This document shows positions 688-52,076 of a DNA stretch of 64,000 nt, piece after piece (position 1 is the stretch's first letter; each line of letters starts with the position of its first letter). Source of the DNA: Fimbriosthenelais zetlandica (lineage: Eukaryota); contig OZ365110.1 in assembly GCA_977030845.1 (NCBI GenBank), positions 29,016,001 through 29,080,000 of the forward strand, in the 5' to 3' direction. Under the pieces are notes generated by a model. It ran no database searches. It was not told the origin of the DNA and saw nothing but the letters and a program-made list of their open reading frames with translations. Made by a program: the position numbers and the translations under genes.

Positions 688-844
688 ATGGGAGAGATGG
701 AGATTCAAGGTGGAGTATTTTCTAGCCTCAATGGGAGGAGGAGCAGGAGTAGGGTCCAGACCACTTTTGGAAATGGATATAGATATGGACTTCTCGTGCT
801 CTTGTTGCATTTGGTGCCAGCAGTTTCACCAGAAGAGAGAAAGG
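688..844 (+). CDS. Gene 1 coding exon 1: initiator Met and signal peptide (MGEMEIQGGVFSSLNGRRSRSRVQTTFGNGYRYGLLVLLLHLVPAVSPEERK)
   Basis: First + strand ATG after about 446 ATG-free nt. Hydrophobic core GLLVLLLHLVPAVS. Ends AAG-G|gtaagt, a consensus phase-1 donor compatible with the exon at 13138. Not in the ORF track. Confidence 0.8.
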
Positions 845-3800
845 GTAAGTATGATGTTTGATGCCTGATGGATGACCTTTTTAACTGAGGTGTGCCCATC
901 AGACCATGCATGTTTTCATCAATTATAATTCTGTGGCCCTGTGGAAAACCTTATTATTTATGATCCATGAAAAATAAATTGTCCTGTCATACGTAAGTGA
1001 ACATTGTGTCTGATAAAATAGTACTTAAGGCATATTTAAATACCTTTTTTTTCGCTGTATCATTTTGGAAGTTACTTCAAGTGATCTTCAAGAGCGTTCC
1101 ATAGATTAATTTTAAAAGAATAAAAAATAAATTCATTAAAACTTGCATTTTCAATTCAATTAGCAGTAAACGGTGGCATATGGATTCCAAATCACTGACT
1201 CAAATACCGTAGTCGGCCACTTTTGCAAAGTGCTAACAGGTGATACTTGGGATTTCCATTTTAGGAATAGATGGAGGGTGTGAGGGAGATCATACCAGAG
1301 ATTTTTCATGCATCCATGCAAGTTAATAAATAAGCGGCGTGGTTGTGGTTGGAGTTTTGCCCTTCAAACCTCCTTGGGCTGGGCTTGTTTTGTGTGACTA
1401 AGGGATCCAACTATTTGATGGATCCAGTAGTGGCTCAGTGGTAGAAGCAGTGGGAGAGGAAGAGGGAGGAGCACACATGTTTGCCTTAACTGTATGGAAC
1501 TCGGTGGTATGCACGTGCTGATAGTGCTAGAGTGGCTGTTCAACCACTGGTATAGGTGGAGTTCCATCTATACTCCTGGGTAGGGCACTGGGAACTAACA
1601 AAATACTTATGAAAGTGGGGCTTCCTCGAAAACAATCCACTAAATGGAGCCTAGGTGATGTTCAACTGCATCTCCCACATCAGTGCCACGCATATGAATG
1701 TGAAAGTCAACTGCGTGTTGCATATCATATAGAAACGCTGTAGAAGTGCTAGAGATAGGTTAAATCACCACGAAAAAAAATCCCTTATATGGAATGGACC
1801 TATAGCTCATCCAATTTTTGAAGATTAAGGTACAAAGTGTCCCAGAGAAGGGTATAGTCCAGGTAGGCGCCAGAGATGTACTTGAGGAGCTGCTGGAGGA
1901 TCCCATACATACCAGAGGGATCCGGAGGAAGGGCAGGGTGAACATGATGTCTAGAAGGCCGGGTGATGGATCCTTCAGGATCTAAGTGGTAGAAGGTGGT
2001 AGAAGGGTATACAGAAGCTCAGGCTTTCAATCATTCCTCTCGTTTAGTGCTTCGTTTCAAGTATGTCAAGTAATCCATCCATTTATAGTTCTTCTCACCT
2101 TCAAAACAAGCTTTCCCCCATTGTTCATTCTCTTTGTGTAGGCCACCACATCTTAAAGTGCTCTTAAAGTGCTTTCAGAATCTCCAAGCTTGTATTCCTT
2201 CCCCTGTCATGTTGGCCACTGTTATGGCAAAGGCTACATTAGGGCATGGAGCCATACTTTGGTTACATTTAATGTCACCGAATCAGAATCTAAATCCTTT
2301 TTGATGTTCTATGTGTACATTCATAACAGTTCGCATCAACAATCTTACTCTTTGATTCCTCTATTTCTTACTTTTTACTTTTCCAGCCCAATTATTTCTT
2401 CTATCAGCTGACATAGCCTTTTCTTTATCCATCACCAGTACTCTTCTGACAATATCAAATAAAGCAATCTGGATATATGCATTCTGCTGATTACATCCAC
2501 CCCGCAGAAAACACCTGAGATGTGTTACCATATGTTCCTCTGGGTAACATAATTTAGACTCTGTTATGTATGGTAGTGGAGTCTTATATGCCATAAACTG
2601 GAGAAGTGGGATATTGGAAACATAAAAACAAAACAAACCGACAAGCCCTCCCCATATCAAGACACCCGTCCCAACTCAAAACTTTCCTTAATGCTATATC
2701 CTGCCAAACCTAATTTCTCAAACGCATTTTATAGCATGTTCCGAATCATCCTCAACATCCATTCCATGGGTAACTCAAACCCAAGATCAGTTTACCTCCT
2801 AATACTCCCATACAAGTTACCAAGAAACCCAAATACCTTGGCGATGCAAGTATTTACCGCAATAGGGTCAGTTTTCTATTCTCAAGGACTTCCCTGAACA
2901 CCTATTTAAGAACCCGACATGACCATTTTTTGAGGAAAGGCGCAGGTAACAGGGATACTACATATTATTTTGTATATTCCTGAGTCCGAACATACCATCT
3001 GTATTTTTTCTTCCACTTCCTTCCACCTACTTACCTGAAAACCCATCTACCGAAGCCCTACTTCGACAGGTGCTTTACCGCGGGCTCGCAGTGGTTTAAG
3101 GAATATTTGGAAGCAGCGAGTGGTCTCTGCCACGTGCCAGATAAGTGGCAAACGCCAGGTGGGCAGTTGGCGAGGGAGAGATACCAGTCAGGCATACCTT
3201 ACCAGCGTCTGTGAAGGTGCAGTGGTAGTACGCACATGTACTCTACACAAGCCCATAACTCACCCCATGCAGGGATCCACCAGCTACTTGGATCATGAAG
3301 AAAATAGAGATTTTCTAAACTGCTGCCTAGAGCAAACATCTTAAAACCCTCAGATGTACAGATAGAAATTCAGCTTAAAAATAATGTAGCGTTTTAAAGA
3401 TATAGGTTTGTGTCAAAAAGCGATTGATCATGCATATATATTAGGAAATTCAAAGAAGCAGTTACTGTAATTAATGTATTCACTATGGTCAATTAATTCA
3501 CTAGGCCTATAATACATTATCTACTGAATGCATCCTATCGATACAGTACACAATCCGACTTTGTATTTTGTTTTAATCAAAGAAGCACTGCACAATGAGT
3601 ACCAAATTCTTGGGTTCTAAAAACACTGTTATACACTACCCTAGTAACAACACCATAGTAATTTAAACCCCATGTCCCGCTAAATCCCCACTTTCTAACC
3701 ACTATATCTAGGCCATACCCTCTTCCTATATATAGGGTCTACAGGCTGCATCCTTTTCCAGCCTCACTCCAATTCACCATGCAGCCCCCACCCACGCCAA

Positions 3801-6800
3801 CTGGATCCTGGGCTGCTCCACATAGAGCAGATGGGATCCAGGGGTGAGTGAATTACTCGCCCAAATTATACTACTACCACTACGTGATAGTACACACACC
3901 ACTGTTTACACCATCACCCCACATCACTCCATCCCGGATCAAAAAATCTACCTTGGCCATTACCTTCCGACCCTTCCACTTCCTATTTTGACTCTGTTTG
4001 CCCTTTCTCATGACATCATTCATTTATTCCTTAAACTCTTTTTTCAACTCTTTTCCTGTATTGCTCCAATGTCCTGCTTTGTGCTTTGTTTCATTCATCT
4101 CTTTTGGGTAATGTTTTGCCTTTCCTTCTCTTTTCCATCTTCATTTTAACCCCCTTATCTGTCATTGCCCGTAGCCTTTGAGACCTCCGGTGGGGTCACC
4201 TCTCTTAACTTGTGGTGGGTAAAAGGGTAAACAGGCGCAGTATTTTAGAACAAAATGTATGGACTACAGCCAAGAAAACTGACGTGCTGATGAAGATAAC
4301 CACAACTAGTCATGTTCGGTGCTAAAGTAAACATCAGTTAAAATTTACCAACACAAACAAGAATGCCTCTCATAACTTTCCCATTACCAATCATAGTGAT
4401 TGTATCGTATAACAAGTTAATGACATTATGTGGGTTAATTATTCAAGTTATTTCCTTGTATTCTTTAAAGCTCATAGTAACGAATCATATCACGTTACTT
4501 TGTTATGTTGATTTCAACTGAAAATTGACTCCTTTAATATGAAATCATAGCTTGCATGGTCTGATGCTTTTCAATGCCTGAATAAGTAATGTTAAAACGG
4601 GACAATGCGATTCCACATAATGATGTGTCTCTCTCCAAACCTTCAAGATCAAACACCTATAGTGGCTAATGGTCCAGAAGGTAGCAGGTGTATATTATTA
4701 AAAACTCTAATTGAGGTTTGCCCATGCTGCATTGATTCTGCTGAAACATTGATGTTACAATAATTTCTCACGTCTACCGGCCTTTTAGCTGTTATATTTT
4801 ATTAATCCCCACGTCTGGGGGAGCCCGCATCATGCAAATGCTTGATTCTAAAATCAATCACTCATGGCACGATCTGTGGGACAATTAATTGGGTCATAAT
4901 GGTATCAGATGTATTGTATGAAAAATATAAGGGTACTAATCATACTAGGTCATCTTTTAAAAACCTTCAAAGTGGGCATTGATGTTCGAAAGTGATACTA
5001 TTAACGTAGGTTCAGTTTTCTTTTTATCTGCTCAAAAACATCCAAATTAATCATTACATTCGATATGTCAGCACTAAACGACCAAATTATGTATATTTGA
5101 GATTCTTTAAGCCTTTATAATAGATGGATTGCCACAGTCGGTCCTTAAATCTTCACGTTTCGTCTAATAGGCCGCTACACAACAATGGCATGGCGCCCAG
5201 AGAATGGGTGTTACTGAAAGTGAAAAGTCATTAAGTGAAGTCTATTAGACTTTCATATGGCTTGCATCCTGCATTTTTTTTAAATTCATGAATAATTTAG
5301 CATAAATTGACAGATTGTAGCCAGACACGCCAATCGAGAGACGAATCCATCTTCAACGGTTTGGTGCAGTGTGGGTGGGTGAAAGTTTTAGTCGGGCTGC
5401 ATGGTTCCCAGGGTGCACCAACCAAAAAAGCACCGTTTGTCCTCTAGAAAACATTGTATTAGAATAACTTGTAACATTTTGCACAGATTTTAGACTACAT
5501 GACAAATTTAACTAACAATGGTAAACCTGCCTCAAATATTCAATAAATCCACCCAAAACTGGTGCAATTAACTTGTGAAGGCAGCATGACAACTGATGTT
5601 TGATCCTTAAAAAGAACTGACATCATATCATACGGCAATAGCCATGTGCATCAATGAAAAAAAAGGCATTAGCTTCGGCGCTCTTACCCACCCACCCAGA
5701 GTGTGCTGTCCCTAGAGCATCAAAAATGCATAAGCATTAGCTCGGGAATGGGCAGGACAAAGCTAAGTACTGAGCATTGCATAAGATATCAATGGACTGA
5801 GAATGTCCCATAGGAACGAATACTGTTGGCGTAAATAGTGTATTAGCTACAGGCAACTAGGCCCGTGACAATACCCCATAGACATCGCATTGTGCATATC
5901 ACAATCGGCGGTCATAATTTGCTATTGTGAAACTACAACACCGGAGCTAATTTGACAAAACTCCTAATTTGTCTGTGATCATCATCAGGATCATTGTGTA
6001 TGTCAAATTGGGCCATCTAGGGCCCGGGCCAAGGCTCGCTGTCATATGCCTAAATACCTAATTGGTCTAGTAAATAGAGTTTGGAATAGAGAGCACTTAT
6101 TGGAGTTTGAGGTCCAGTGTAGTGTTACTATGAAGCTCTAGTGAGTAGCTCCTTCGTGTAGTGGCGGCCCAGATACATTGCAAATCGGGGTCACGACGAG
6201 GCCATGTAAATTTCCTTTCAGGGGTCATCCATTCCCGGATCTGAGTGAATGACAGTTATTTTATACCAGGGTAATTAGGATTTTTTCATTCCCTAGTTAT
6301 TTTGAAGTTGGCATACTGGCCTGAAATATCATACAGGGAATTATGCAGTAAAAGTTTCCCTCTGAAATAGTATTCAAAGTTTACATTCAACATGCAAACT
6401 GCTCGAGGGAATAATCAATCTCTCTATCATCAAACGCGTGAAATGTTTTTGTCTTCTTTGAAAGATAAAAACTGTCAAAAAGCCTGTTTCTTTTCTATAT
6501 TGTGCGGTACCTATATTTCCCAGGATCATCACCTTGATTGCTTATCATTTCCAAGCCATTTCAAAGACTTGAATCATATCCAAGGCTGCCTTTGATTGGT
6601 TACACTGTATATCAAAGTACAACCAGCCCAAAGCACTTTGCACCGAAGTAAAATTAATGACTTTACCAAAGTAAAGATGAAAAAGACGTGGTTTCTTTGT
6701 TCTTCCATCTAAACGTACCCACTTGCCAATCTAGCTGGCAAAAAAGAACGCCTGTATTAGAGGCGATCTTCCCCTTATATGAGATTTTTAAGCGTGTTGA

Positions 6801-9800
6801 TGGACATTTAGAAACAATTTTAAGGGAGCTTGGTAATGGGGTCTAATAGATGAAGGACGGCATCAGAGGGAAAGATAAAACACATATCCATATCTCTGAC
6901 GCTCTATAGGAGGATTAGTGCTTGGCTTATGTGTTTCCATTAAGATATTAAACAAAACATTTGCCTTGGCATAGCAGCGCTGTTGGTACTTTAGCCTTTG
7001 TCTGCAGTTTGTTTTTTAGTCTTTGTCTTAATCGGATTGCAGCAATTTGCCAGCTTATCCACCCGTGGGAATTCTTATCCTGTGTTAAGAGTAAGTCTGT
7101 GCGTGTCCATATAAGGGGTTAAAGGAAATGTATACTTCCAACAACAGTGACACATGTGCACATCTATTAAAAATGGAACTACTTTAGTTTCAAATTCACG
7201 TTAACACTGCGACCCTACATCATCAATCATTTATGTTCTTTAAAATATATATTCTGCAATGTGATTTTTTCAACTAGTCCATTCCTCGGATTACGCGAGC
7301 CATTCTGCATGCACAGCATTCATAAATTTTTGTTCCCCTATTGGTTGCACATTTCACATTCACATTAATATGTATTTCCATGTGAAATTTCTAGGTTAAA
7401 AACTGTGGATTAAGTCCCAACATAGAAATGACTGATAGGAAAATGGCACTGGCCTGATTATATCTATCAGCAAGTTTGTTTTAAACCTATTTTCGGGTAT
7501 TTCCCTGTAAAGTGGTAGTTAGTCCAGAAAAAACAAAATGGGCATGAATCACTCTCTGAGCAGGACATATACACAAACCAAACAAAGAAGACATGCGGAA
7601 CATGCGAGCTAGTAATGATTCAAAGGCTAATTTCTGCCTCACCCATCCCCCATCACATCCTCACCCTATCAAACTAAGCTAATCTCCCACTCATCGACTT
7701 TACTTCTCAACAGAATTTTTTTAAGCGAGCGTTTTTAATTAGGCCTGAAATCTGGGGGAAATAATGAAGCCGGGAGAAATGCTTGTATATACGAGTCAGG
7801 TGTAGTTAATTTGTCAGAGTGATCCGGCAATGAGTTTGCCTGCAGCTTTCACTTTTATTAGCCTCGTCTTTGGGCCGGCTTTTTGGGAGGAAGCCATGTA
7901 AGATAGATGGGAGCGGAGGAGCTATACAAAAGGCTTGGACTGGGATTGTTAAGGTAGGCATGGAGACCTGTGGTTTCCAAGGCAGGGTCCTTGTTGTTTG
8001 CAACAACAAAAAATAAACTGGAATTGTACCTGTACTTTTTGCCACCCATATCTTCTGCCATATATTACATTTATATGTATATTTCAGGCATATTCAAAAT
8101 TACAGTTCATATTAAAATAAATATGTATTGACCACAATAATTATGGCGATACTGAAAATTTGTTTAACCTAGTTTCCATAGGAAAAATAGGTCTGCACAT
8201 GTTTATCTGTGTGGATAGCCAACAAATTTTCATGAAAGCATCTATCATGAAAGCACCTATTGGCTATGACTTGCTTCCAACTCTTTCCAAATGGCAATAA
8301 ATTTTGTACTTTGTCCATCAATTATCTAGTCTGTACTCGTATAGATCGCCATGTCTGGTCACTCAAGAGGAATCGATACAGCTAGGTGGGGAAGGACATT
8401 GAGCAGTAGAGAGGTTGATCAGTGAATTCTGGGCAGCCAGCAAGGCTTTCAGCTGTAAGCCAGGGCTGGTCAAAAGGTAATTGGAAGGTAACAAGGGGGA
8501 GGTGCATGGCTGGGTAGAACTTGGAGAGGGGGATGGGGGTGATTTTATACCTGTAGTTAACCCTCTGATGTCTCCTGAGAGGTTTAGTTGATCCTGAAAG
8601 ATTATAATTAATTTTACCCCATTTTGATAATTTTGATCTTCACGAAGGAATCATGGTATCGGATCTACGCCAATCTCAGTCAATCCAAAGCAACTTCAAT
8701 TAAGGAAAAGTAGAAAATCAATGAAGGGATTCTGCAGTTCCCACTTAAAGGATCTCACTTACTTCAGATGCTCTGTATAGAACCATCAATCAAAATCTGG
8801 TAGGCCCTATATTCAGCAATGAAATGAAGGCAGTGATTGCTTCTCTTTAGAGCACCACATCCCTCCATTGCACACCTTGCCTTGTCCTACCTGAGCTGCA
8901 TACAGATTATCTTACACCTGTCACTTCTATCAGTCCAAAAACCCGACACTTAATCAGCCACTAATTGAAATTATAGACGCTGCCAGCATTTTGCGTGAGA
9001 GTCGATGGCTTGTTCCAGTGAAATGACACTGATTGGCTCCGGACTGCCTCCTCTCCACCATGCAGCAAAGAACACCCAGGATAAGAATCGGAGAAGCTTG
9101 CATGTATTGTTAATGGATTCTGCTTTCTGTGATACAATTGTACCACTTGTATAGTTTTAGATCATTTATATATCTACGTTCATAAAACGTTAGCAATCAG
9201 TCTGAGTTGAACTTAACAGGCTGAAACATGCTCACAAAATTCTTTGAAGACAATCTGTTAGCTAGGATTTTTATCAGTCTAATTGCATTATATTTCCTGC
9301 AGGAAATTAGAATGATGATGAGGTGGTGAGCTTTTCTGGAATGGTTAACTTGTGTGGTATATATAGCCCTGGTTTTAACAGTGGTATGGGTTACCCTGAA
9401 TGCTGGGCACGTCAGGAGGATTCAGCATCGTAAGCCATGCAAACAGCCTGACATTTCATCAAACCTCAGCTCTGTACGGCGAAATAGTTTGCCATTTTCA
9501 GTTTATGAATTCTGGTGAGGGGCAGAAGGGGGTAGAGGGGGATAAAATGAAGCAGGGAGATTTTTTTGGACGAGGACCAAGGACGGGGGATGGAAACCGG
9601 TCATCATGGAGAGATCAGGCGGTTTGTGATCGCTATCTCACTATGCACGTCATCCTGACTGCCATTAGAGATAGACCAGTATTTATAGACTGGGAGGAGC
9701 AGCTGACATGCTCAGGTTCAAAAATGAATATAAAAACAACAGAACAAATATGCCAGTTGAATACTTGAGGAGTTGTATGGTTGGGGTTTGTTGTTGCGAA

Positions 9801-12800
9801 AAAGAGCGTAGCATTGCAGGCAAATAGGAAACATGCCGTCAGCGCAACAGTCTGCTCTTTGCAATTGCCCCAAATGATATACCTCAGACAATGAAAATTC
9901 AGACAATGGATGTCCACATAGTGAGGAATGGGCCAGGGACTGAGTGGGCAAGTGAGATCTGGCCAATAAGATAAACTGTGATTTACACTGCACGGAATGT
10001 CCACATGCTTAGTAGTTGCTTTGCAGACATTTCCAAGATACTTCAGATTAAAATTATTCATGACCAAAGACATGATTACAATATTATTGGCCTATGAGGA
10101 GGAAAGTTAAAATATAAAATATAAGCCTATGAAAATGAATAGATGGTCAACGACAGCAGTGATGGGAAAGATGGACAAATGAGATAGACCTTTAGCTAAG
10201 TCCAAGCTAAATCATACATGTTAGAGAATACTGATGACCTTATAAAAGGTCCCCTGATACAGAAATAGATCGGTGAAGAAGCATGGATAGGTCCACTGAG
10301 AACTGAGGAACGAGGAGGAAATAGAGCAGGCTAAAAGATAGAAAGTAGTGACAACATGAATGATATTGATGGTACAGATAGTACAAGCCCTATAAATAAT
10401 CAACTCCATCCAAATAACACTGTCAACAACCCTTTGTCTCAGGGCCATAAATTCTAACTCACCCTCCAGCTCTCTGTTCACCACCCTGCCTTTACAGTAA
10501 GTGAGAGCTGCATTTCCAACTGCTCCCAGTTTCCTGGCCCCAGTCAAGCCTTTTCCTGGCCCTCCGCCATCATCTCCCATACCCATACCACCCAATTATA
10601 GGTATACATTAGCGGGTTGCATTGCCCAAGCATCAGTCTCCCTCAGAAAGAGTGGAGGCGGAATATTTCATAAATGATTTTATCTTTCCGCCCAACTTGT
10701 TCCGCAGTGCACGGAGAATTAGAGCTAACAGCTATGATTTTGTAGGCACACTCCAATGCTACCATTATTACTTCTCGTGTGTCAAAAACAATTATAAGCC
10801 AACTCTGGCGGCATGTAGTCAATAGGCGCTTTGTTCCATCAGCACTGCAGCACCCACAGACACACTTTTTGAAAACAAATGTCATATCATTGAAGGACAT
10901 GGATCTGACGGGCTTAATTGAGCCATGAGTATTTTGTGACTCAGAAAGTGGCATTGATTGGAGCATATGGTTGGAAGGTGATACCCCTCTTTTACTGATT
11001 TTTTCCCTTTCATTTTATCTGTATTTTCATTCTTTTCCATAAACATCCTCAATAATGAACCAAATTTGAAAGCGAATCCGTTGTCCTTGTTATTATTTAG
11101 TTTTTTCAATTTCTCACCATCCCTCTATTTCATCTTCCTTCCTCGAGTTCTGTAGATTCACCCTTTCTTATCATCTTTCCGCGCCTTGCTTCCTTTAAGT
11201 CTACAGCTTCGTTAACTTGTCATTGTATAAATGCTATAAGCCAGAGTGACAATAGTTAGAGGGAACGATTGCAATTAGGCCCTAATGGCCACTATTGTGT
11301 ATAGGCCACAACTCGTTTCTATCGCAGATATAATTGCAGGGACTTCAATATTTGAAATCCCTCCCTCCCCAAATATCAACTCTTAACACTGGATGGCAAA
11401 CTCAGAGGGCCGTCAATCCATTCTGTTTATCTCAGAGATGTTTCATTACAAGGAAGCCTTATTTGTGAGGCAAGGACATTTCCATCGGCTAACAGTTCTT
11501 GATAAAAAGCGATTATACGGAATGAATTTAAGACTTTGTCTGAGTCATATATATGGAACTGCTCTGAAATAATTGTTCGGAAATTATTACTAAAATATAA
11601 ATAAAATAATTATATAGATCTATTTTTTTTAAACCCCAACAAAAATATAGATACTAATGATATATATTAAATATGATATGATGGAATTATCATACCTATA
11701 TTTAAGAAAATTTGACATTCCTTAAGATATAAATCTTTTTTTTGCTCAGTCCATGATTCAGTACACAACACAATTCCATCTACTGATATCAAATATACCT
11801 GAATCATCTGCCTTCTTTACTCCTCCATTCTGATTAGTGTCAAGCTATGGCTTCAATTAAAAAAAGAATTGAGAATCTGGACAGGCATGTAACATCGTCG
11901 TATGTAATTCTATATCGAAAGCTTTTTCCCACCAATGAAACATTGATGTTTTATATCCAGGTTCCTGAGGCCCTCACGCATGCGCATAGAATATCTATGT
12001 TTCAGGGCTTCCGGATTGAATTCCAATTATGTAGAATCTGATCATTTAAGTGTTTTATACGATTTAGAGAGGATGGAACAGGGCACTGACAGGAGTACAA
12101 GGCAATCACTGTGATAAAAAGATCCATTAGCAGATACATTATCCAACTATATGTATCACAGCGTTCAAAAGACAAAAAAATGATTCGGCTGTATAGCTAG
12201 ATTGCTTCGGGGAACTACTCCAAGTTTATGCGAGAAAAATGAAAGGCTATAAATTGAAGTTATGTATCCCCATTGATAAATATGGATTATCAATTTTATT
12301 TCTTGCTCTCATTTCACATCATGAAAGGAAATGGATTGAGGCAATATGATATATATAAATCACTAAAGTTTTTGTGTGTGCAAAAGCATCAAAATATATG
12401 ATTCAATTGTCCTCATTTGATATGACCCAAAAGCTACGAAATGAGAAAGGTTCTAGTCAGTAGTATCCCCTTGAACCATTTGGATCATCATCGTTTTCAA
12501 GCCGACAATACAGTGTGAAAATGGTTGCCACCGCGTACCACCAAGAATATTTACTTTTTAAATCTTATCCATTTCCCCTGTCACCACTTTGATGTACATG
12601 TGAACACGGCTTCAGTCAAATGATGTGATAAAGCTCCAGTGGGCATCAAATATAGCCTGTCAATTCCTCAGTCTCTTATTAAAATAGTGAAAATAAAAAA
12701 TAGCCAAGTGTCTGTCAAAGTGGGCGATGTGTCGGAGGTAGCCAAGTGCAAACATCATCTTTTGAAGTGCATGGCGCATCCGTCCGTGATATCGCCTATC

Positions 12801-12812
12801 AGCATATCATTT

Positions 12813-12827
12813 CCCCCCCCCCCCCCC
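12813..12827 (+). repeat. Poly-C tract (15 C)
   Basis: Read directly; about 310 nt upstream of exon 2. Confidence 0.9.
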
Positions 12828-13137
12828 ATATTATAAGTCAATATAGAAAGCCTTATTTTGTCATGAATATGTCTATATCAGACATTAAGATTCTATTTAA
12901 AGCACTGTGTAATGTATTTGTTTGATTCGGCTCTTAGTGATATAATGCTCATTCCAAAACTAAAAGATAAGAGGATGATTTCCTGTTTGATAGTACCATG
13001 TGTTCGCTACATACATGTGCATGAAGTTAGCAAAATTTAGTGATTTAACTTCCTCAAAAACAATTCCATCAATATCCCCAAAAAATATTTCCTCCGAAAT
13101 GATAACAAAACTTATATATTATTATTCTCATTTCCAG

Positions 13138-13419
13138 GAGCAGTAAAGGAATATTGCCAGCTGCAAACCTTCAGTGCCCAATGTGCTAATGACGAGGTCA
13201 TCATTATTACAAGTGCCCAGTATGGACGCATGCGCCTGGGAGAATGCCTTAAGATCAACTATGGTTCACTAGGCTGTGCTGCTGATGTCCTGCCCGAGGT
13301 TGACAGGAAGTGTTCGGGAAGACAGGAATGTGAGTTTCCTGTGGCCGACCTCCATGGGCGGCAGCCATGTCCTGGAGACCTGACCCCCTTCCTAGAGGCT
13401 TCTTATAAATGCATGAAAG
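13138..13419 (+). CDS. Gene 1 exon 2: SUEL / rhamnose-binding-lectin (Gal_lectin) fold domain
   Basis: Acceptor attctcatttccag, donor AAAG|gtgagt. Translation (G)AVKEYCQLQTFSAQCANDEVIIITSAQYGRMRLGECLKINYGSLGCAADVLPEVDRKCSGRQECEFPVADLHGRQPCPGDLTPFLEASYKCMK has 8 Cys plus the AxYGR, KCSG..C and PC...L.ASY.C patterns of SUEL domains. Confidence 0.95.
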
Positions 13420-18794: not shown

Positions 18795-19200
18795 GTCTCT
18801 TCTCTTCATACTCTCCCTTTCCTTCTTTTCACCTCCTCGTAAGTCTCTGCCCCTCAATTCTTTTTGCTCTGATTTCTGGGACCCAAAGGTCTTCCCCCAT
18901 GCTTTCCCTGTGAGTTTGTTCCTTTCTTGCATGGTTGCCCCTGCTTAACTTTGTACCCATCCATTCAATTTCTCTCTTTCATCTTGCTGTCTTTCTCTCG
19001 AGTACTCGTTTTCTTCTATTTCTTTATTTTGCTTCACTTCTCCTTCGCCCCCCCCCTCGACTCGTTCCCAATCTCCCATGTTTATAAATAGTTTTCCCCA
19101 TCCCTCCCAGGTCCCCACTCTTCTTGCAGTCTCTCCCCTCCTTTCTGTAGAATGTTGAAAGCAAAGTTTCCCCGCCTCTTCCTCCCTTAGCGACCTCTAA
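18795..19200 (+). repeat. Pyrimidine (CT)-rich low-complexity tract
   Basis: Strong C/T bias with no fixed period; boundaries approximate. Confidence 0.6.
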
Positions 19201-20721: not shown

Positions 20722-21138
20722 TGAAGGTCCCCAGCAGTCAGGGATGTGTACCAGGTCAGGGAGCAATCCTCACTGCAGCTAAAGGCACTATAGCCAGTGT
20801 CTTCTCGGAATCCACAGAATATGGAACTGATATTTGTCCCTGGGTTATCCGGGCCAGCCCGGGCCAAATCATCAACATCACTCTCGTCAACTTTGCCCGT
20901 GCTCCCAACCCGCACGAAGAAGACGGCGAACAAAATGGTTATGTGGATACTTATATTCCTGGCCCGAGGATCTGTTACCAGTTTGCAGTTATTAAGGAGA
21001 GAGGTTCAAGACGCTCAGTGACTGAATGTGAGGGAGGTCCACGAGAGGTGAAGGCCTATACATCATCCTCACATCAAGTCGATATCACCATTCTCAGCCG
21101 GAAGTCCACAGACACATTCTTCCTGCTGCAGTACGAGG
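20722..21138 (+). CDS. Gene 1 exon 3: CUB-like domain
   Basis: Acceptor tatattttcag, donor GAGG|gtaaga. Contains C...G.IAS, CPWVIRASPGQIINITLVNF, YTSSSHQVDI and FLLQYE, which are CUB hallmarks. Overlaps ORF 20721..21230. Confidence 0.93.
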
Positions 21139-24100: not shown

Positions 24101-24246
24101 ACACTGATTGAAACATTGATTCAGAGAATCATGCAGGTTCTTATAGTTGACTTTGAAAAACCTAAGCATGAAATGACATAGGACATTCTAGAATTGCAAA
24201 CATTGCTAATGATGCTGATAAAATAGGTATAATGGTTGTTTTTCAG

Positions 24247-24399
24247 TTCTGGGCTGTGCCAACCCGCCTGTCCCCAGAGGAGGCCATCTGAGACGCGTGG
24301 GTAACCAACTGGAGATCAGGTGTAACTTTACTGATGAGCAGTGGATACTGTCGTGTGATGGATACAGATGGAGGGGCGATTATGGCAACTGCAGCAAAG
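24247..24399 (+). CDS. Gene 1 exon 4: short sushi/CCP-like module
   Basis: Acceptor gtttttcag, donor AAAG|gtaaga. VLGCANPPVPRGGHLRRVGNQLEIRCNFTDEQWILSCDGYRWRGDYGNCSK has 4 Cys with a C..P.P..G start and W before the last Cys, plus NFT and NCS sequons. Confidence 0.9.
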
Positions 24400-25281
24400 G
24401 TAAGAAGCAGTCTCTATTTCCTTCTCAATTACTTCAAAACCCCATCAACACATTCATTCAGGGAGAGGTAATTATTCATGCATCTGTTCATAATAGGTAC
24501 TAGCTTAATGACAGAGAGGTTCCTAAGCTTTTACTTTGAAGCATTCGAGACTTAGAACAAAGAAATCATGGCTGGTAATAAATCATGAAAGCTGCCATCT
24601 TGTTGCAAGTATATGTAGGCTGAAAGTACCTCTCAGACCTGGGAAATATGTAGCAATTGTAGGATCTCCACTTCTGCCAAGCACAAGTGACATTGAGAAT
24701 TACTTCAGGATTGACCTCGAAGCTGGTTCCATCCCAAGTCATGGTTCTATTTTCTTATCTAAAGCCTGAAAGGCAGATGCTATTTCCAATTTTGGGTCAG
24801 GCTTTGTAAAGGACATTCCGTCCTTTTAATGAAGTGTCTTATTGGTTGTTCACGAAGGCATTTCACTAAAATCCTTTGTTTCAAATTTGCCGAAGGTTTC
24901 TTCCCGCAGATCTGGTAATCTGATGAAGTTTCTTTCAACCCCGAGTGAAAAATTGTTTACCTGCAAAGGTTATCAGTCATTGTAGGGACTTTCAATGATC
25001 TGTCAATCGGATAAGGTTGACCTTATTGCTTGATGTGTCGATGTCCTTGATTTCCCAATACATGACATTGACCAAATATTTTAGCTAAAATGATTACCTG
25101 CAATTACAAACGCAGATACAAATCTTCCTTCCATAAACATTTGGAAGGACGTTTATGGAAGTAATAACGTTTACGATGCATCAAGCAGCCGAGTCGCAAT
25201 ATGTTATTACACATGCAACGAAGTCTGAGACAAACTGACAGGAATAATATACGAGGCCTTGATTTCAGCTTGTTTCCTTTT

Positions 25282-25295
25282 GTTTCCATGGCAAC
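25282..25295. promoter_or_regulatory. RFX X-box (intron 4)
   Basis: GTTTCCATGGCAAC fits the GTYNCY-AT-RGNAAC consensus exactly. Confidence 0.5.
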
Positions 25296-26997
25296 CTTGA
25301 TGGCTTTATTACGTTGATGAGGCTCTATTGTCATGACGTCGCTTTCTTGCTTGTGCCCATATATTTGTCGCGGAAGCAAATGAATTGAGGTGCGAGTATT
25401 GCGGATGGTGGCAAACACAGACTTTCTGAACTTGATCAGCCTATTGTCTTTTTCTGCAGCCTCAGCATTCTGCTCAGAGTAGCTGAGGAATAACTCGGCA
25501 GGAACCAGGAGCAAACATTTGAGTAGCATGCATAGAGTCCCAGACAATTGCATGCAATCATTAACAGACAATGAAAAAAAAACGTTTTCCTCCTTTGACA
25601 TGGTAGATTGTGCAGACGTGGTGAGGTTCAAATTAACAAGAGACGGGCTTCTTTTTCAGTGGAAATTGGAACTTGGTTATGTCTCCGGACTGATTTTTAG
25701 ACGAGACTTGTGGCGCTGATTAGAAACCTGAGACTAGTTATAGATGTGGTGAACCAAAGTGCAGGCAATAATGGATATTAATTTCTCATTATCACTGAAG
25801 TCTTTCTATTAAAAAAATCAAAATTGCACTGAAAAGTGACAGATTACCTTGCTTTTCTACACCTTCAACGCTATAGCAGTCCACCCACAAAGGACATAAA
25901 TTGAAAGGATCTACATAAAAAAGTTATTGATAAAGTCACATGTTCTCATTCAAATAATACAATGAAACAATGCAAGGTTTCAATACATTTGCAAGCAAAA
26001 GGTCTATCACGCAATGACTGGAAGGCAAAATGTTTCTTTGGCGTCTTAAACAATACATTTTAATTAATATAAAATGCACGCATTAATGTTTGAAATATAA
26101 AGGCCATACTGTATTAATAAAAACATAGATCTGCTCTTTCAGCATTACAGCATCACTTTCACTGCTTTTAAAGAACTAAAGACGTATTCAAGTTCTGTAT
26201 TTCACCCGGAAAGCAAACATTGGTTATATCAATGGCTTTGCCTGCACCACCACAGCATGTCATGCGATAGTCTAGAGCCTCATTCACTTTTTTGGTGGCA
26301 GTGAGGCCGAGAAATTTTTATAACTTTGGTGAAACATGATTCATGGGGTTGTCGGGAGAGGGTGAATTATTTTGGTTTGGTTTTCCTTTATGGATTGATT
26401 CTAAAATAGCAGGAAATCCTGCATTCAGCTGTCTTAATCCCCACAATGAATGGCAGGCGGCCCTTATTGTTCATCCTTCCCTATCAATCACCCCTTTCCC
26501 CTCGAAGGGTGGATTCCTCCAACTAAGGCTTTGAAAATTCCCCTGGAAATCCCTGCCAAACCAGGGAATGGGGTAGCGGTGAAATCTAGCCAAGCAGAGA
26601 TCTATTGCATGACTGGTTTTAAAGCCAATTACCATTTTAATCAATGAACCAGTCATTTTTCCAGCAAAGACGAATGTCCATAGTCAACTGCACTTTATTC
26701 AGGTGCTGTAGCACCTTACTGAATTTAAAATCAGTTTCTGCCAGGGGTAGCAAAAAACATAACTGGCAGGAGCGAAAGCAGTGCAAAAAAATTCGATTTC
26801 CCGTTTTTATGGCTCAAAAATATTTGCATTTTGAATTGCCAAAATAAAAACACATTGCCAAAACCCAATCCTTAAACTTTATAGGATATTTGAAGTGGGC
26901 AAGGGGATGGGTTTGAGAAGGAAGAGAGTGCCATGTATGAACGGGCCCCTGGGAAGATGCAACTTGCTTAAAGCCATATCCTATAACGTGCAAGGCC

Positions 26998-27025
26998 CAC
27001 GTGACGTCAGAAGTGGTCACATGAC
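26998..27025. promoter_or_regulatory. Overlapping E-box/CRE plus GTCACATGAC cluster (intron 4)
   Basis: CACGTG (26998-27003) overlaps TGACGTCA (27002-27009); GTCACATGAC at 27016-27025. Confidence 0.35.
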
Positions 27026-28566
27026 TCCAGTCCCACACTCGCAGCACAAACGACCATAATCCCGCAGCAAGAGCGAATTTCTTTCCCACCTATTAAAACC
27101 CACCACAAAAATCAACCGGTTTCATTTCCCCTTCTCGTCCTCGCATGACACGATCGATCTGGAAAAAGAGCCAACTCCGGCATTTCATAAATAGGAAATC
27201 TCATCGGCTCCATTTCATTCTCCCTCGCTCTCACTCAGGGCATCGACAAACAAGTAGCATAAAGTTTCAACCAATGGTTAAAAAGATTTAGCACTTTCCC
27301 TCCTTCTTCCACAGTGTAACAGGAGCTGTATCATTTCAATAGGTGAAAATGATCTTGTTCTTAATCAATTTGTCTGACACTGATAAAAATCATCATTTAT
27401 CTCATTGAGGCCCATTTCAAATTTATTTAGCAAGTGATATGTTTGCTTATCCCTTTCATTGCCCATGAGCAGTATCAGGACTTTATTATAAAAGCGTATA
27501 TATATATTGTCCCGTAACTGCACACCCACCTAGATCGCCAACCAAAGACTGCTGTTTTAGTGTATAATATGCATGCTGATGGTAGCATATGTCATGCTAT
27601 ATAATGAACTGTACTAAAAGGTCAAAGGTTGATCTTGCGGATTCCTTGACAACTATATAAAAGGGGACATACTTGTTAGTTGCAGTACATTCATAAATTC
27701 AGTTACTTATTCATCAAATACATATATAGCAACTTGTATTGATTATTGCCACAGTATCCATTTGTTAGCAAACTTCCATGACCAGGTAGTCTAAACGATT
27801 TTTTATTATCCATTTCGTATTAATTTTTTTCGGACTTAATAACACTTCTGTAATGTGAACATAATAAGAGTTTTTGGAAGATTTCTGCACACGTTTGAAT
27901 GTGGGTGTCAATTTACATTATGTAATTCATCCCTCTTTCTGTAGAAAGAGATGGCTAATGGACTTAAAACCACTAAAAGACTAAAGAATAAATCCATTTA
28001 TTATCCACACCTAAACACATTTTATGGACTGAACGTCAGTTTTCTGAATGACATTCAGATATTGGATCAGAATCTTGTTTTAAGACCGATTGAGCCGAGC
28101 CTGGATATGTAGTTTTTGCTGTAGTTTAAATCAACACTTTATGATACTGATGTTCCCCTTTCACCAATGAAACTGATTACTGGTGATCTTTCTGATTGAA
28201 TTGGGTGTATTCTCCCCCAAAAATACTTGGCGAAAATGAGAAACTGGGTATTATTTTCTAAAATTAATAATCAGACACGTCTGTGGCCATTTATGGGGTA
28301 TCCTTATTATGGTTGTAATGTGTATGTTACACTAAATTAGGTAGCCGAAAAGATACTACATTGTATATTCGTGCAACCAAAATTTCCTTCGGCTTGGCCA
28401 TACCAATTTTTGAATGCGAATCCCTAGAGCGCCTCAAAGGGTTAGCAGATGAGAATGTTCCAGATTTCCTTGTTTATTTTTATCATTCAATTCAAATTAA
28501 TTCTTTTGCATGTCATTAAATGTTCTTTGTAGACATAAACTTCAATGATGTCTTTTTTATTTCCAG

Positions 28567-28614
28567 AATCGGCCGACGGTTCCTTTTTCCCATCGGATGG
28601 GAATTTCCCATATG
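28567..28614 (+). CDS. Gene 1 exon 5: 48-nt juxtamembrane stalk mini-exon (ESADGSFFPSDGNFPY)
   Basis: Acceptor tttttatttccag and donor TATG|gtaagt are both strong. Phase 1-1, open frame, GC-richer than its flanks. Confidence 0.8.
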
Positions 28615-29586
28615 GTAAGTGAAATGGCATATGCCTTTGTCTTATAGAAACACATAAGGGAAGCTTTCTATCACTTTGTCATACATGTTGGAATTACATT
28701 TGTGCTGCACAAAGTAGTCCCCAAAGCAATTCAACAAAAACCCTCATATTTCCTTCTCAGGGCAGCAAAATGTCCATGTGGCAATACGACATTGATACCT
28801 ATCATAACAGTGGAAAACAGGAAATATTATATTTCTTGGATATATAGGACATCCTTTCTTTTTATTCAAATACATGTATTGCATTTGTGTTGCAATACTT
28901 GGTAGTATTTATAATATCTAATTTAAAATTGGTTACAATCAAGGATCTGGGGCCAATTTTTTATGGTTTGAGTTTGGAGAATTTATTAGGATGTCTCTCC
29001 ATAAAAAAGAATTATCCGGTCCACTTCACAGTAAATATAGCTGAAAACCAATATCCTGGGAGCGATACAATTCAGGTCTAGTATCAAGCAAGATTAACTA
29101 TTCTCATTAGATAGGAGATAGACTGAGGTCTGGTGCTTAGTCTAACCCTCGAACCTTTCAACATCACCCTATACGGTTTTACAAATGACAGTCATATGTC
29201 GTCCAGTAGTTTTAATAAAACCTAAGTTACTTTACGTTAATGACCGTTGTCCTGATAACAAACCGAAACTTTGTTCATAATATAACGTTACTCCTCACAA
29301 AAGATGATCCTGATGCAAATAAATGCATTAACCAGGAGGCCCACATCAACCAAATGATAGAAATTCTGTAAAATCACCCAATGATTTAAGAAATCCATCA
29401 AATTGTCTGATATAGACACTATTGCCTTTTAAAATATCAAGACTTAGCATCTAATGATATGTCGCCGCAGAGTAAGAGATTCATGAGTCAGCCATCTTTA
29501 GCAAGTACATGTATGATGTCACAGGATATCACGTGTTGTTGGTTAGCCAACCAGAATGAGGAAGGGGTTGGGCATTGCAATTGTTA

Positions 29587-29600
29587 CACCCAGGGGGCGC
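29587..29600 (+). promoter_or_regulatory. CTCF-like motif (intron 5)
   Basis: CACCCAGGGGGCGC, 12/14 to CCACCAGGGGGCGC. Confidence 0.3.
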
Positions 29601-31134
29601 CACTGAGCCGATATTGGAATGTTAGGTGGTAACCCCTGTGAAGAAAAATTGCAAAGCACCAATCCTTTCCTTTTTCAGATTGGCTTACCTAGGAAAATAA
29701 CTTTATAACCGGTGTTTCCCTTTAATAACAATAGCATTTCAAATCCATATTCTGTATCTATTTCCAAGCATTATATTTGCTATAACAGACTGCTATCATT
29801 AATGAATGTCCTCTAAGACCCTTTTCGAACATACAAATGTTTTTATGGAATATTTTATCAGTGCCATACTTAAATCTAGTAAAGTAATTCAAAACTGAGG
29901 ATTAAGACCTTCTCCTTTCAATGAGGGCTGCGTGCTAAGAATGTGAGCTAGTCCTTCTCTCTGTCTCATCTTACTTCTCTCTCTCTCAATGAGATTGAAG
30001 CTTTCTAAGGAAAAACATAATACAGTTTTCTCTATATAGAATTCTTTGTATTAGTGATAGATTTAAAAAAAAACTCTATTAGATACACTGAAAGGATCGT
30101 TCTAGAAACGGTACTAAGTTTGATGAAAAGCAAGGGGATTTCTATAGGAGATCATTTTACATTTACTGTAAGAGGGAACAAAACCAACAGCCTGAACCAA
30201 CCAACCACACTAGCTTTCTCTCATACATTTAGCTGTTTCTAATATAGTTTTTCTTAGACTGTATCTTGGTAAGAAACATAGGCCTATCCCATGGGAAACA
30301 CTGATTGCCCTTTACGCTAGCTTCCAAACAACAACATCCCTTCTATCTTCTCATAATATATTCATTTTCTCAACTCAACTCAGTCAATCCATATACCCAT
30401 CCAAATCCAGTTTTAAAAAACCTCACCATCAGAATCCACCTACAACCGCCGCACACCCCAACACTCCACTCCCAGAGTTTTCATTCTTCATACGGTCCAT
30501 CAATTCACAAATTTTCTTAACAAATCTCTGACTCAGGCCACAGGCAATCAGTGGGTGAGTGTTGGTTTTAATCCTGCATGGCGGGCTTGAAAATAATGGT
30601 GTTAGTCGGGATAATGATGTCTTTCTAATGGCTGGCTGTGCAAACGGCGACCATTGCGCAATCTGACAAGTTGTCAGGCCAGGGACTAGCTCTGTCACCG
30701 ATCATACCATTCACGGGCTGTCGTGACTGGGGATAATCACGCTTTTCAATAGCAATATCTGTCAGCAGATAGCAGGCTCCCCAGGCAGGCCCCATTCTAT
30801 GGCTACTCTTTTCTCCTTGCCTGAGCTGCCCATTAAAAACAAATTGGTGAAAATAAGTAAAATCTGTAGCCCTAATCTCTTCCTGGGGGTGCCTTTTTAG
30901 ATTTGTGCTTCTACACTAAGGTTGGATTAAATCAAGCTTAGCAGGGATCCAAGGACAGATTTTAAAAAAATAGAACATCAAATGGAATGTCAGCCTCAGT
31001 GACAGCCAAGGAGCTGAAGATAACTTATTATGACAACAATCAATAATAATCACTTCATATACTTTGAAAAGTGAAAATATAAATAATTGCATTGGCTGCT
31101 ATTTACTGATGTATTATTATTCTACTCGTTCCAG

Positions 31135-31222
31135 GTATTCTTATTGTGGTTGCCATAGGGGTGGCTCTTGGTGTTTTCTTTGGTGGAATACTCCTGACTC
31201 TAGCTTCACTTTATATGAAAAG
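31135..31222 (+). CDS. Gene 1 exon 6: transmembrane helix (GILIVVAIGVALGVFFGGILLTLASLYMKR)
   Basis: Acceptor tctactcgttccag, donor AAAAG|gtaagc (phase 2). About 25 hydrophobic residues followed by a basic stop-transfer KR/KRK. Confidence 0.92.
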
Positions 31223-31254
31223 GTAAGCAGCTTTCATCTTCAGTTCTATTTCAC

Positions 31255-31267
31255 TGCCATCTAGTGG
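31255..31267 (-). promoter_or_regulatory. CTCF-like motif (intron 6)
   Basis: TGCCATCTAGTGG, which reads CCACTAGATGGCA on the minus strand and fits the CCRSYAGRKGGCR core fully. Confidence 0.5.
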
Positions 31268-31478
31268 CGATGAGTGGGACTAATTGATATGTGTTCTACG
31301 CAGGCTCAGACAAGTCACCGTACGTGTAAACAAAGTTATGCTAAAATACTGTAAATTTTATATCCAATTATCAATTTTATGTCTACTACTGCATGCATTT
31401 CTGTCCGAAATAAAGTATTGAATTGAATTGAATACATTCCATGAGACGTGAATTAACTAAACACCTCTCATTATTCAG

Positions 31479-31797
31479 GAAAAGGAAGGATGAAGGAACA
31501 CCTCCAGTTGGGCCAGATGACGAAAGGATTTACAATTTTAATGAAGCTGACAAGCGTCTTGGTGTCGGCCCCAATATCGGGCAAGACCCAAGAATGCCAC
31601 ATGGTACCCTCCCCCACGGTACAGGGCAGGACCGCCTTATGATGGAGGCCCAGGTGAAGGACTACCTGGCCGAGCAGCCCTACCAGCAATATGGATACAC
31701 TGAAACTGGAGACCCGAGTTATAAAGGCATGACTACCGGGTCATCAGCTCACATCTATGAGAGCCCAAAGTTTGGCCGTAAGTTTCATAACGTCTGA
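31479..31797 (+). CDS. Gene 1 exon 7: cytoplasmic tail to stop codon
   Basis: Acceptor ctctcattattcag; AG+G restores Arg. Reads KRKDEGTPPVGPDDERIYNF...SSAHIYESPKFGRKFHNV* (3' part of ORF 31441..31797), TGA at 31795-31797. Confidence 0.9.
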
Positions 31798-51991: not shown

Positions 51992-52076
51992 ATGGAGTTG
52001 GGAAGTCCGTTGGCAATGCTGACCCACTTGATACCAATTTTCACCATTCTTATCAGCGTTTCAGCTGAGACCAACG
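51992..52076 (+). CDS. Gene 2 signal-peptide exon (MELGSPLAMLTHLIPIFTILISVSAETN-); rest of the gene not found in the window
   Basis: Purine at -3 and G at +4 (GAAATGG). Classic hydrophobic core ending VSA|ETN. Donor AAC-G|gtaagg, phase 1. Preceded by a GC/CpG-richer region at about 51480-51900. Confidence 0.65.

Follow-up and report, generated by a model that had tools for sequence, protein, structure and literature searches.

Among the membrane proteins that bear a SUEL/rhamnose-binding lectin (RBL) domain, the Slit/Robo co-receptor EVA-1/EVA1C is a single-pass form. Its SUEL/RBL domains, which bind a protein ligand, are devoid of the residues needed for binding sugar (PMC2430599). The single pass and the loss of these residues are common to EVA-1 and the protein described here, for which a protein ligand is likewise predicted; EVA-1 differs in having two tandem SUEL domains and a FAM176-type C-terminal region and in lacking CUB and sushi modules. 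The latrophilins (ADGRL1-3, LAT-1) share the Lec/RBL fold, and in the titles of the PDB entries Lec appears as the protein-binding module for teneurin/TOL-1; however, they are adhesion GPCRs with olfactomedin (OLF), GAIN and 7TM regions, whereas our protein has one transmembrane (TM) helix. An adjacent CUB-sushi pair is seen in SEZ6, CSMD and the CUB2-CCP1 segment of C1r/C1s/MASP, but all of these differ in having repeated CUB/sushi units and no SUEL domain, and C1r/C1s/MASP additionally contain a protease domain. The SEZ6 family combines its repeated CUB/sushi units with an NPxY tail, while our protein has one CUB, one sushi-like module and no NPxY motif in its tail. DCBLD1/DCBLD2 (ESDN) and CDCP1 resemble it in being type I proteins with a CUB ectodomain and YxxP tyrosines in the tail, and the YxxP sites of DCBLD1/2 dock CRK/CRKL upon phosphorylation by Src-family kinases or Abl (PMC6029619). 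LCCL and discoidin domains set the DCBLD proteins apart, as does their having several YxxP sites; our protein lacks such domains and has a single conserved site, YESP, which fits the YxxP pattern. No sequence homology was detected between the DCBLD tails and that of our protein, and the likeness is functional only.

The window, a stretch of 64,000 nucleotides from Fimbriosthenelais zetlandica, contains at positions 688-31797 of the plus strand an intact seven-exon gene of 31 kb (Table 1), for which we rebuilt the model independently. Each of the seven exons is open and flanked by AG acceptors and GT donors in compatible phases, with the four ectodomain exons E2-E5 (282, 417, 153 and 48 nt) being uniformly of phase 1-1. 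Six of the exons yield a product of 471 aa, which upon inclusion of the 48-nt mini-exon E5 becomes exactly 487 aa, the length that the preliminary description had given for a type I membrane protein spliced from seven exons; that model is thus reproduced exactly, with canonical splice sites and collinearity with homologues. Within the 13 kb upstream of E2, E1 is the sole candidate that combines an ATG, a hydrophobic core and a strong phase-1 donor, and no alternative first exon was found in 845-13137; the n-region of its putative signal peptide is unusually long (~33 aa). Between E4 and E6 no good candidate of compatible phase emerged other than the mini-exon. Its product aligns with ...FSVDNNFPY of the homologue P0021 and with the FPY consensus of the family, and the paralogues L021, L022 and L017 have a mini-exon ending in FPY ahead of their TM exon. 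A second candidate in the same interval, 30233-30268, was rejected as a hydrophobic segment devoid of homologue support. No open extension of the kind that stop-codon readthrough or a longer tail would need runs past the TGA of E7, as a TAG follows six codons on and no Y-Y/F-E-L-D motif occurs downstream. There is no Rfam match within the window.

Table 1. Exons and features of the seven-exon gene, in window coordinates
Feature	Position	Strand	Description
E1	688..844	+	Translation start, then an extended basic n-region and a hydrophobic core (LLVLLLHLVPAV)
E1 putative signal-peptide cleavage		+	Likely after AVS, followed by phase-1 donor G|GTAAGT; from hydropathy and the -3/-1 rule, judged by eye
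E2	13138..13419	+	SUEL/rhamnose-binding-lectin fold domain, 8 Cys; Pfam PF02140, alignments with RBL and latrophilin Lec structures in the PDB
E3	20722..21138	+	CUB domain, 4 Cys, acidic insert APNPHEEDGEQNGYVDTY
E4	24247..24399	+	Short sushi/CCP-like module, 4 Cys, invariant Gly-Cys start, Trp between Cys3 and Cys4
E5	28567..28614	+	16-aa stalk mini-exon ESADGSFFPSDGNFPY, phase 1-1
E6	31135..31222	+	TM helix (residues 353-376), then stop-transfer YMKR
E7	31479..31797	+	106-aa cytoplasmic tail, 7 Tyr, TGA stop; includes Y463 (YKGM) and Y475 (HIYESPKF)
C-terminal motif HIYESPKF	31753..31776	+	YxxP-type candidate SH2 docking site, by alignment and DCBLD1/2 analogy

Comparisons with related genes bear directly on the junctions of this model. 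The spliced protein aligns with the transcript-like P0021, itself an uninterrupted ORF on a 1684-nt contig, in a single HSP (residues 53-485 against 5-418, 41% identity, E 1.6e-107), and it is collinear with proteins from Capitella and Paralvinella (E 1e-61 to 1e-80). Three intron positions, namely SUEL|CUB, CUB|sushi and stalk|TM, coincide with those of the Capitella teleta gene (P0152), which spans 2.8 kb as against the 31 kb of the window gene. Both boundaries of the CUB exon are retained in an orthologous scaffold of another species (L014), with the same AG, GT and phase, and the nucleotide similarity between the two ends 5 nt beyond the donor. Look-ups of sequencing runs, for RNA with the CUB exon and for runs of any kind with the TM and last exons, listed none. 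Taken at the level of sequence, with the junctions placed by homology, the comparisons indicate that the seven exons make up a genuine gene, whose product is a single-pass type I receptor.

Pfam searches with the exons and the homologues recovered only the SUEL and CUB domains. The SUEL domain of E2 was detected at E 6.2e-11 (PF02140), and in the predicted AlphaFold ectodomain of the homologue (pLDDT 81) the best single-domain match is the latrophilin Lec (TM-score by target 0.72-0.80, rmsd 2.2-2.6 A). The CUB assignment of E3 by itself falls below the Pfam threshold (PF00431, 15.2 bits against a cut-off of 21.4, E 0.028), whereas the corresponding region of P0021 scores 33.7 bits (E 4.8e-8). 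E3 further places at 0.97 with CUB clusters by Atlas features, and proteins of CSMD length (3,300-3,800 aa) occur among its sequence matches. SEZ6 clusters are the next nearest by Atlas features (0.87). E3 has the four CUB cysteines, and the homologue model matches the CUB domains of spermadhesin, TSG-6 and neuropilin (TM-score by target 0.55-0.60), while the CUB and sushi modules of that model together are matched structurally by the C1s CUB2-CCP1 pair. The sushi exon E4 gave no Pfam match. A sushi/CCP module typically has four cysteines paired 1-3 and 2-4 and a conserved tryptophan between the third and the fourth; the alignment of these modules (A3) shows no variation at C3, C25, C36 and C48, and conservation of at least 90% at W41. 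The 50-aa model of E4 (pLDDT 88) found CCP-containing structures in all of its best eight PDB matches, at TMq 0.52-0.67 and without reaching significance (E 0.5-1.3). The cysteine counts of the SUEL, CUB and sushi modules are 8, 4 and 4, with all 16 of the 16 domain cysteines being kept. No FAM176/EVA1 domain was detected by Pfam in the tail exon or in the full-length homologues. With one SUEL domain, a single TM segment and no FAM176/EVA1, OLF, GAIN or 7TM region, the protein is neither an EVA-1/EVA1C nor a latrophilin, as had been proposed at the outset, and the order SUEL, CUB, sushi-like module, TM helix and Tyr-rich tail given in the preliminary description is likewise borne out by the domains, the folds, the lone TM helix and the seven tail tyrosines.

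The sugar-binding site of the SUEL domain merits closer attention. All 56 paralogous SUEL exons have the eight cysteines and the arginine of the YGR motif (56/56), which the window gene also retains, and with 41-56% identity this is the most conserved module of the ectodomain, the CUB domain being the most divergent. RBL lectins are defined by a DPC...KYL motif (PMC10817417), in place of which the window SUEL has QPCPGDLTPFL, with Thr-Pro where the loop-2 lysine is expected. At the position of Glu42, directly after the first cysteine, it has a glutamine (Cys-Gln), and in the latrophilin RBL domain the substitutions E42Q, E42D and K120R each abolish sugar binding (PMC2430599). Thus, both the glutamate at +1 of the first cysteine and the loop-2 lysine, which are needed for binding rhamnose or galactose, are absent, and because the window SUEL lacks this pair we read the ectodomain as one probably devoted to protein recognition rather than to sugar binding. 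The same Glu/Lys pair is kept in ~8 of the 56 paralogues, so that sugar binding may persist in some members, and the loss of the canonical site in the window SUEL leaves room for a glycan site of a non-canonical kind, which it may possess.

The hydrophobicity of the spliced protein reveals just one TM segment, of 24 residues, which contains a glycine zipper, G361-x3-G365-x3-G369 (GxxxGxxxG). Five clear C10 paralogues match the exon encoding it at 72-83% identity and three weaker matches do so at 48-64%, and relative to P0021 24 of its 29 residues are the same (~83%), against 41-44% for the protein as a whole. The window gene has both the FPY-GILIVVAIGVALGVF TM signature and the C-terminal H-x-Y-E-S-P-x-F motif, and falls in the conserved-TM subfamily. 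The C-terminal motif, which holds the single conserved YxxP of the tail, is kept in paralogues and in other species. The tail taken whole gave no paralogue match at E<=0.01, only the short motif being common, and Pfam recovered no family in E7 at E<=1 and no match in E1.

Searches of the genome with the individual exons recovered at least 56 intact SUEL exons (65 in all), 53 CUB and 52 sushi exons, which are arranged collinearly, in sets spread over four contigs. The closest relative of the window gene is foreign: the CUB exon of P0001 is 70% identical (tree support 99/96), while paralogues from the same genome do not exceed 46%. In the tree, rows from this genome and from others interleave as much as shuffled labels do, and because the paralogues are interspersed with genes of other species in this manner the copies must be old. 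By these sequence relationships the window gene is one of about 56-60 anciently duplicated paralogues, and its initial designation as an orphan was wrong, given both these paralogues and the closer relative in another species. A profile search for homologues returned 13 proteins, and all those that are named are annelid. Among the nearest are "SUEL-type lectin domain-containing proteins" of Capitella teleta (CAPTEDRAFT_214555, _219720 and _220546), with further relatives in Paralvinella palmiformis (LSH36_203g01055, LSH36_316g07089) and Helobdella robusta (HELRODRAFT_159365). Their complete architecture follows the same order as that of the window gene, with which they also agree in cysteine pattern, FPY stalk, TM sequence and C-terminal H-x-Y-E-S-P, at an identity of just 33-45%. 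The uncharacterized annelid SUEL and CUB proteins mentioned in the preliminary description therefore do exist, as full-length homologues in Capitella, Paralvinella and Helobdella (and, by structure, as Dimorphilus-style entries). The named sequence matches did not extend to the wider spiralian range put forward in the preliminary description, and a search of the AFDB clusters gave only weak matches (TM-score about 0.4) to other SUEL/CUB proteins. A literature search found no paper on the SUEL-CUB-sushi-TM architecture or under the locus tags from Capitella and Helobdella. The family is uncharacterized, and every member that has a name comes from an annelid.

Taking these features together, we regard as the best reading, and a reasonably probable one, that the window gene encodes a protein-binding recognition receptor or co-receptor belonging to an old paralogous family and signaling through phosphotyrosine. 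The ligand type, oligomerization, phosphorylation, adaptor binding and biological role are in each case predictions. The ectodomain would serve as a protein-recognition module rather than as a sugar-binding lectin, a use of the SUEL fold for which the latrophilin Lec (teneurin/TOL-1) and EVA-1 (Slit) offer precedents. The divergent CUB domain would probably set the specificity of each paralogue, and the conserved GxxxGxxxG helix probably mediates oligomerization or pairing with a membrane partner. Once phosphorylated, the YESP (YxxP) site would probably recruit an adaptor with an SH2 domain, one of the Crk/Nck/Abl/Vav class, in the manner in which DCBLD1/2 recruit CRKL; this analogy from one YxxP site hints only weakly at any particular adaptor. 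Of the roles suggested in the preliminary description, guidance or recognition is plausible, while the innate-immune option is weakened by the glutamine at the Glu42 position and the Thr-Pro that replaces the loop-2 lysine.

That innate-immune option would make the protein a membrane pattern-recognition lectin, whose SUEL domain binds microbial rhamnose or galactose and whose expanded family diversifies recognition. It can draw on the size of the family, on the paralogues that keep the Glu/Lys pair, and on the SUEL/RBL lectins that bind LPS and act in defense in fish, bivalves and horseshoe crab (PMC10817417, PMC8878817). Nevertheless, we consider it improbable for the window gene, in which the two critical residues and the DPC/KYL motif are replaced, including by a change (Glu42 to Gln) that is by itself abolishing in latrophilin, as is K120R at the lysine (PMC2430599). 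Moreover, the paralogues are of old origin, with closer relatives to be found across species, and therefore do not reflect a fast lineage-specific burst, and the SUEL domain is the most conserved module of the ectodomain rather than the most variable. A different proposal takes the high conservation of the TM helix relative to the ectodomain as its point of departure. CUB-bearing single-pass proteins such as NETO, SOL-1 and LEV-10 are auxiliary subunits, and an auxiliary subunit of this kind, comparable to NETO1/2, SOL-1 or LEV-10, would use its helix to pack on an ion channel or multi-pass receptor; indeed, when the ectodomain was compared with PDB and Swiss-Prot structures, Neto2 from the GluK2 complex and NETO1/2 were among the best matches. 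These matches, however, represent generic CUB similarity (TM-score by query about 0.26-0.28), an LDLa module is missing and the CUB domain is single, and the conserved phosphotyrosine-type motif points instead to adaptor signaling, so that we give this proposal little chance of being correct.

Two further explanations appear to us very improbable. Descent from EVA-1/EVA1C with a remodeled ectodomain, which would make the gene an orthologue of the Slit/Robo co-receptor, might account for a SUEL-bearing single-pass protein without sugar-binding residues, a loss that EVA-1 shares (PMC2430599), and mouse EVA1C is indeed among the structural matches, albeit at rank 14 (TM-score by query 0.33). Against such descent are the one SUEL domain in place of two, the CUB and sushi modules foreign to EVA-1, the missing FAM176/EVA1 domain and a copy number of about 56-60, which is unlike that of a conserved single-copy co-receptor. 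The other explanation, that the locus is a non-working gene formed by chance-joined exons or a decaying family copy, could point to the look-ups of sequencing runs, which listed none, and to family fragments elsewhere in the genome, some of which contain stops. It is hardly compatible with seven open exons that have canonical sites, compatible phases and a full set of domain cysteines, nor with a model that aligns end to end with its homologues and has a foreign relative as close in the CUB exon as P0001.

A rather speculative reading, which we think unlikely though worth stating, is that the about 56-60 paralogues constitute an ancient annelid surface recognition code resembling Dpr/DIP or Beat/Side. 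In such a code the sugar-blind SUEL domain would bind a common teneurin- or Slit-like protein and the divergent CUB domain would set specificity. For the subfamily that includes the window gene, the near-invariant zipper helix would provide the link with a membrane partner used in common and with YxxP phosphotyrosine signaling.

These observations extend a single gene to a defined family with three testable features: a lectin fold whose sugar site is lost, a TM helix that exceeds the ectodomain in conservation and one invariant phosphotyrosine-type motif. Annelids serve as slowly evolving models for the evolution of nervous systems and development, yet no function has been described for this receptor family, which numbers about 56-60 genes in the present genome. 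If neither a recognition code nor a set of co-receptors is at hand, this would be an ordinary exon-shuffled receptor family. If the recognition code is real it would amount to a previously undescribed receptor system, and either a code or a co-receptor set would open a new way into the study of cell-cell recognition in spiralians.

The window is gap-free animal DNA of ~40% GC (G000:C10:29016001-29080000, on contig C10 of the 447 Mb source assembly G000), and pieces of a receptor are recognisable in its + strand open stretches. Reading the exons directly from their splice sites, we obtained a gene of seven exons, in which all acceptors are AG and all donors GT (GTAAGT, GTGAGT, GTAAGA or GTAAGC). 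E2, E3, E4 and E5 (282, 417, 153 and 48 nt) are each of phase 1-1, as is classically seen where extracellular modules have been shuffled. Six exons yield a product of 471 aa, and addition of the mini-exon E5 brings it to 487 aa, exactly the length given in the preliminary description, whose observation of seven exons is confirmed. The predicted protein has a single TM segment (residues 353-376), three N-glycosylation sequons, seven tail tyrosines, and eight, four and four cysteines in its SUEL, CUB and sushi-like modules respectively.

Exons of the window gene and a candidate exon in the 3' half of the window
Feature	Window position	Strand	Content
E1	688-844	+	start codon, signal peptide
E2	13138-13419	+	SUEL
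E3	20722-21138	+	CUB
E4	24247-24399	+	sushi-like
E5	28567-28614	+	stalk, 16 aa
E6	31135-31222	+	TM helix
E7	31479-31797	+	tail, TGA stop
Candidate signal-peptide exon	51992-52076	+	ATG, hydrophobic core MELGSPLAMLTHLIPIFTILISVSAETN, phase-1 donor G/GTAAGG

Comparison by itself lends these junctions strong support. The spliced protein aligns with the homologue P0021 (418 aa) in one HSP over residues 53-485 of 487 (41% identity, E 1.6e-107), and P0021 is one uninterrupted ORF on a 1684-nt contig that looks like a transcript, because in three genomes the genes of the family are interrupted by introns. L014, an 873-nt genomic scaffold from another species, holds a CUB exon orthologous to E3 with the same borders (AG/TG at the start, G/GT at the end), and its nucleotide similarity to the window stops 5 nt beyond the E3 donor. 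The places and phases of the introns at the SUEL-CUB, CUB-sushi and stalk-TM boundaries are also common to the window gene and the Capitella teleta homologue P0152. The doubtful exon, E5, is the sole good phase-compatible candidate; all homologues have an FPY stalk with which it aligns, and in paralogues the TM exon is preceded by FPY mini-exons. E1 is the sole first-exon candidate within 13 kb, and its long n-region has counterparts in several homologues. The gene for P0152 (L082, KB310730.1) occupies 2.8 kb vs 31 kb for the window gene; relative to this Capitella gene with common intron positions, introns in the window gene's genome are expanded roughly eleven-fold.

The SUEL exon is recognised by Pfam (E 6.2e-11). 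The CUB exon scores 15.2 bits, below the threshold of 21.4, and the CUB of P0021 lies above it at 33.7 bits; Atlas features group the window exon with CUB clusters (0.97). Residues 1-292 of P0021 were modelled with AlphaFold (pLDDT 81), and the model matches the Lec domains of latrophilins (TM by target 0.72-0.80), the CUBs of spermadhesin, TSG-6 and neuropilin, and the CUB2-CCP1 of C1s. The sushi-like exon was modelled at pLDDT 88; each of its 8 best PDB matches is a chain with CCP modules (factor H, Crry, MASP-1/2, C6, C5b-9, FHR-2 and MAP-1) but with E of 0.5-1.3, non-significant for so short a domain, and "sushi-like" is therefore a fair label for E4.

A genome-wide search of G000, one exon at a time, returned 53 CUB, 65 SUEL and 52 sushi matches, with order and strand preserved, on C1, C10, C25 and C38. 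The window gene is part of a tandem row, with paralogues ~40 kb upstream and ~5 kb past the window's end. Those homologues that carry names are hypothetical proteins described as "SUEL-type lectin domain-containing"; the Atlas cluster (106 members) and the top-ranking clusters of AlphaFold DB are annelid or bear names of this type. Our literature search found no paper on a SUEL-CUB-sushi-like-TM family, and a 2022 review states that in lophotrochozoans the role of these lectins "remains elusive" (PMC8878817, on SUEL lectins). The interpretation in the preliminary description is partly right: its SUEL-CUB-sushi-like-TM-tail architecture holds and is near certain, and the annelid SUEL+CUB relatives to which it pointed exist in Capitella, Paralvinella and Helobdella, but its "orphan" fails before more than 50 SUEL, CUB and sushi matches each in collinear sets. 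A conserved TM exon of the GILIVVAIGVALGVF type occurs nine times in G000, on C10 only, vs more than 50 SUEL, CUB and sushi exons on four contigs; the family therefore comprises at least two TM/tail subfamilies.

The CUB exon has 46% identity to its best own-genome paralogue and 68% by HMMER (70% in the 125 columns aligned for the tree) to P0001 from another species. A maximum-likelihood tree built from 33 CUB segments places the window gene next to P0001 (99/96) and then P0002 (93/93), and in it own-genome and foreign rows are mixed to the same degree as shuffled labels (11 changes needed). From this interleaving, together with the closer cross-species relative, the duplications are older than the species splits.

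The latrophilin RBL binds rhamnose via Glu42, which directly follows the first Cys (+1), and via Lys120 of loop 2; binding is lost in E42Q, E42D and K120R, and proteins are the expected ligands of receptors without these residues (PMC2430599). The window SUEL has Cys-Gln at the Glu42 position and QPCPGDLTPFLE where DPCxGTYKYLE stands in sugar binders. Across 56 SUEL exons (E2 and 55 other full-length exons, L027-L081), all with open frames and eight cysteines, residue +1 of the first Cys is Gln in 21 and Glu in 9, the Asp of DPC is found in none, and the loop-2 Lys stands one position earlier in 26. Eight of the nine Glu-bearing exons have the loop-2 Lys (Fisher p 0.007), and the two residues look like a charge pair kept together. 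Given their co-occurrence in 8 exons, a minority of paralogues may keep a sugar site; in the SUEL of the window gene, judging by these residues, it is lost.

The TM helix is 72-83% identical to that of five clear C10 paralogues and 48-64% to that of three weaker ones, and matches P0021 at 24 of 29 residues (whole protein, 41-44%). It carries G361-x3-G365-x3-G369, a glycine-zipper pattern with an established role in helix packing. The tail has no whole-length match among paralogues; H-x-Y-E-S-P-x-F is kept in paralogues and across species, usually 1-8 residues from the stop, and its YESP conforms to YxxP. Such sites in the YxxP tails of the CUB receptors DCBLD1/2 are bound by the SH2 domain of CRK/CRKL once Src-family kinases or Abl have phosphorylated them (PMC6029619). 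Among the last exons of six C10 paralogues (L017, L018, L021, L022, L023 and L024), five stop 1-5 codons after YESPx[FL]. L024, the downstream neighbour, has a longer tail beyond HIYESPKF with a Y-Y-E-L-D-P motif, seen also in longer Capitella proteins; the window gene has no L024-like extension past the motif. Long poly-glycine runs (up to ~15 Gly) occur in the cytoplasmic tails of L017, L021 and L022, and none in the window gene.

No long open frames similar to the family were found in window 32000-64000, and Rfam gave no match anywhere in the window. The SUEL exon of the next paralogue downstream lies at C10:29085313, ~5.3 kb past the window's end, and the candidate exon could be its signal-peptide exon; apart from this, at ~52 kb, the 3' half has an intergenic appearance.

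Among paralogues, conservation within the ectodomain is highest in SUEL (41-56% identity; 42-57% by HMMER) and lowest in CUB (25-46%), which fits a SUEL that would engage a partner common to paralogues and a CUB that would be the seat of paralogue specificity. The ectodomain would serve as a protein-binding recognition receptor or co-receptor, the TM helix in oligomerisation or pairing of the receptor, and the tail in signalling via a phosphotyrosine docking site; we consider this the most likely working, at somewhat less than an even chance. An immune lectin, a rival in line with the innate-immune option of the preliminary description, is weakened because the window SUEL is without the sugar-site Glu and Lys. 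The remaining rivals to the protein-binding receptor were a NETO-like auxiliary subunit, an EVA-1 orthologue and a dead gene. Among single-pass receptors with a SUEL or a CUB domain, the window gene is a new variant, of moderate significance alone and of greater significance as a family.
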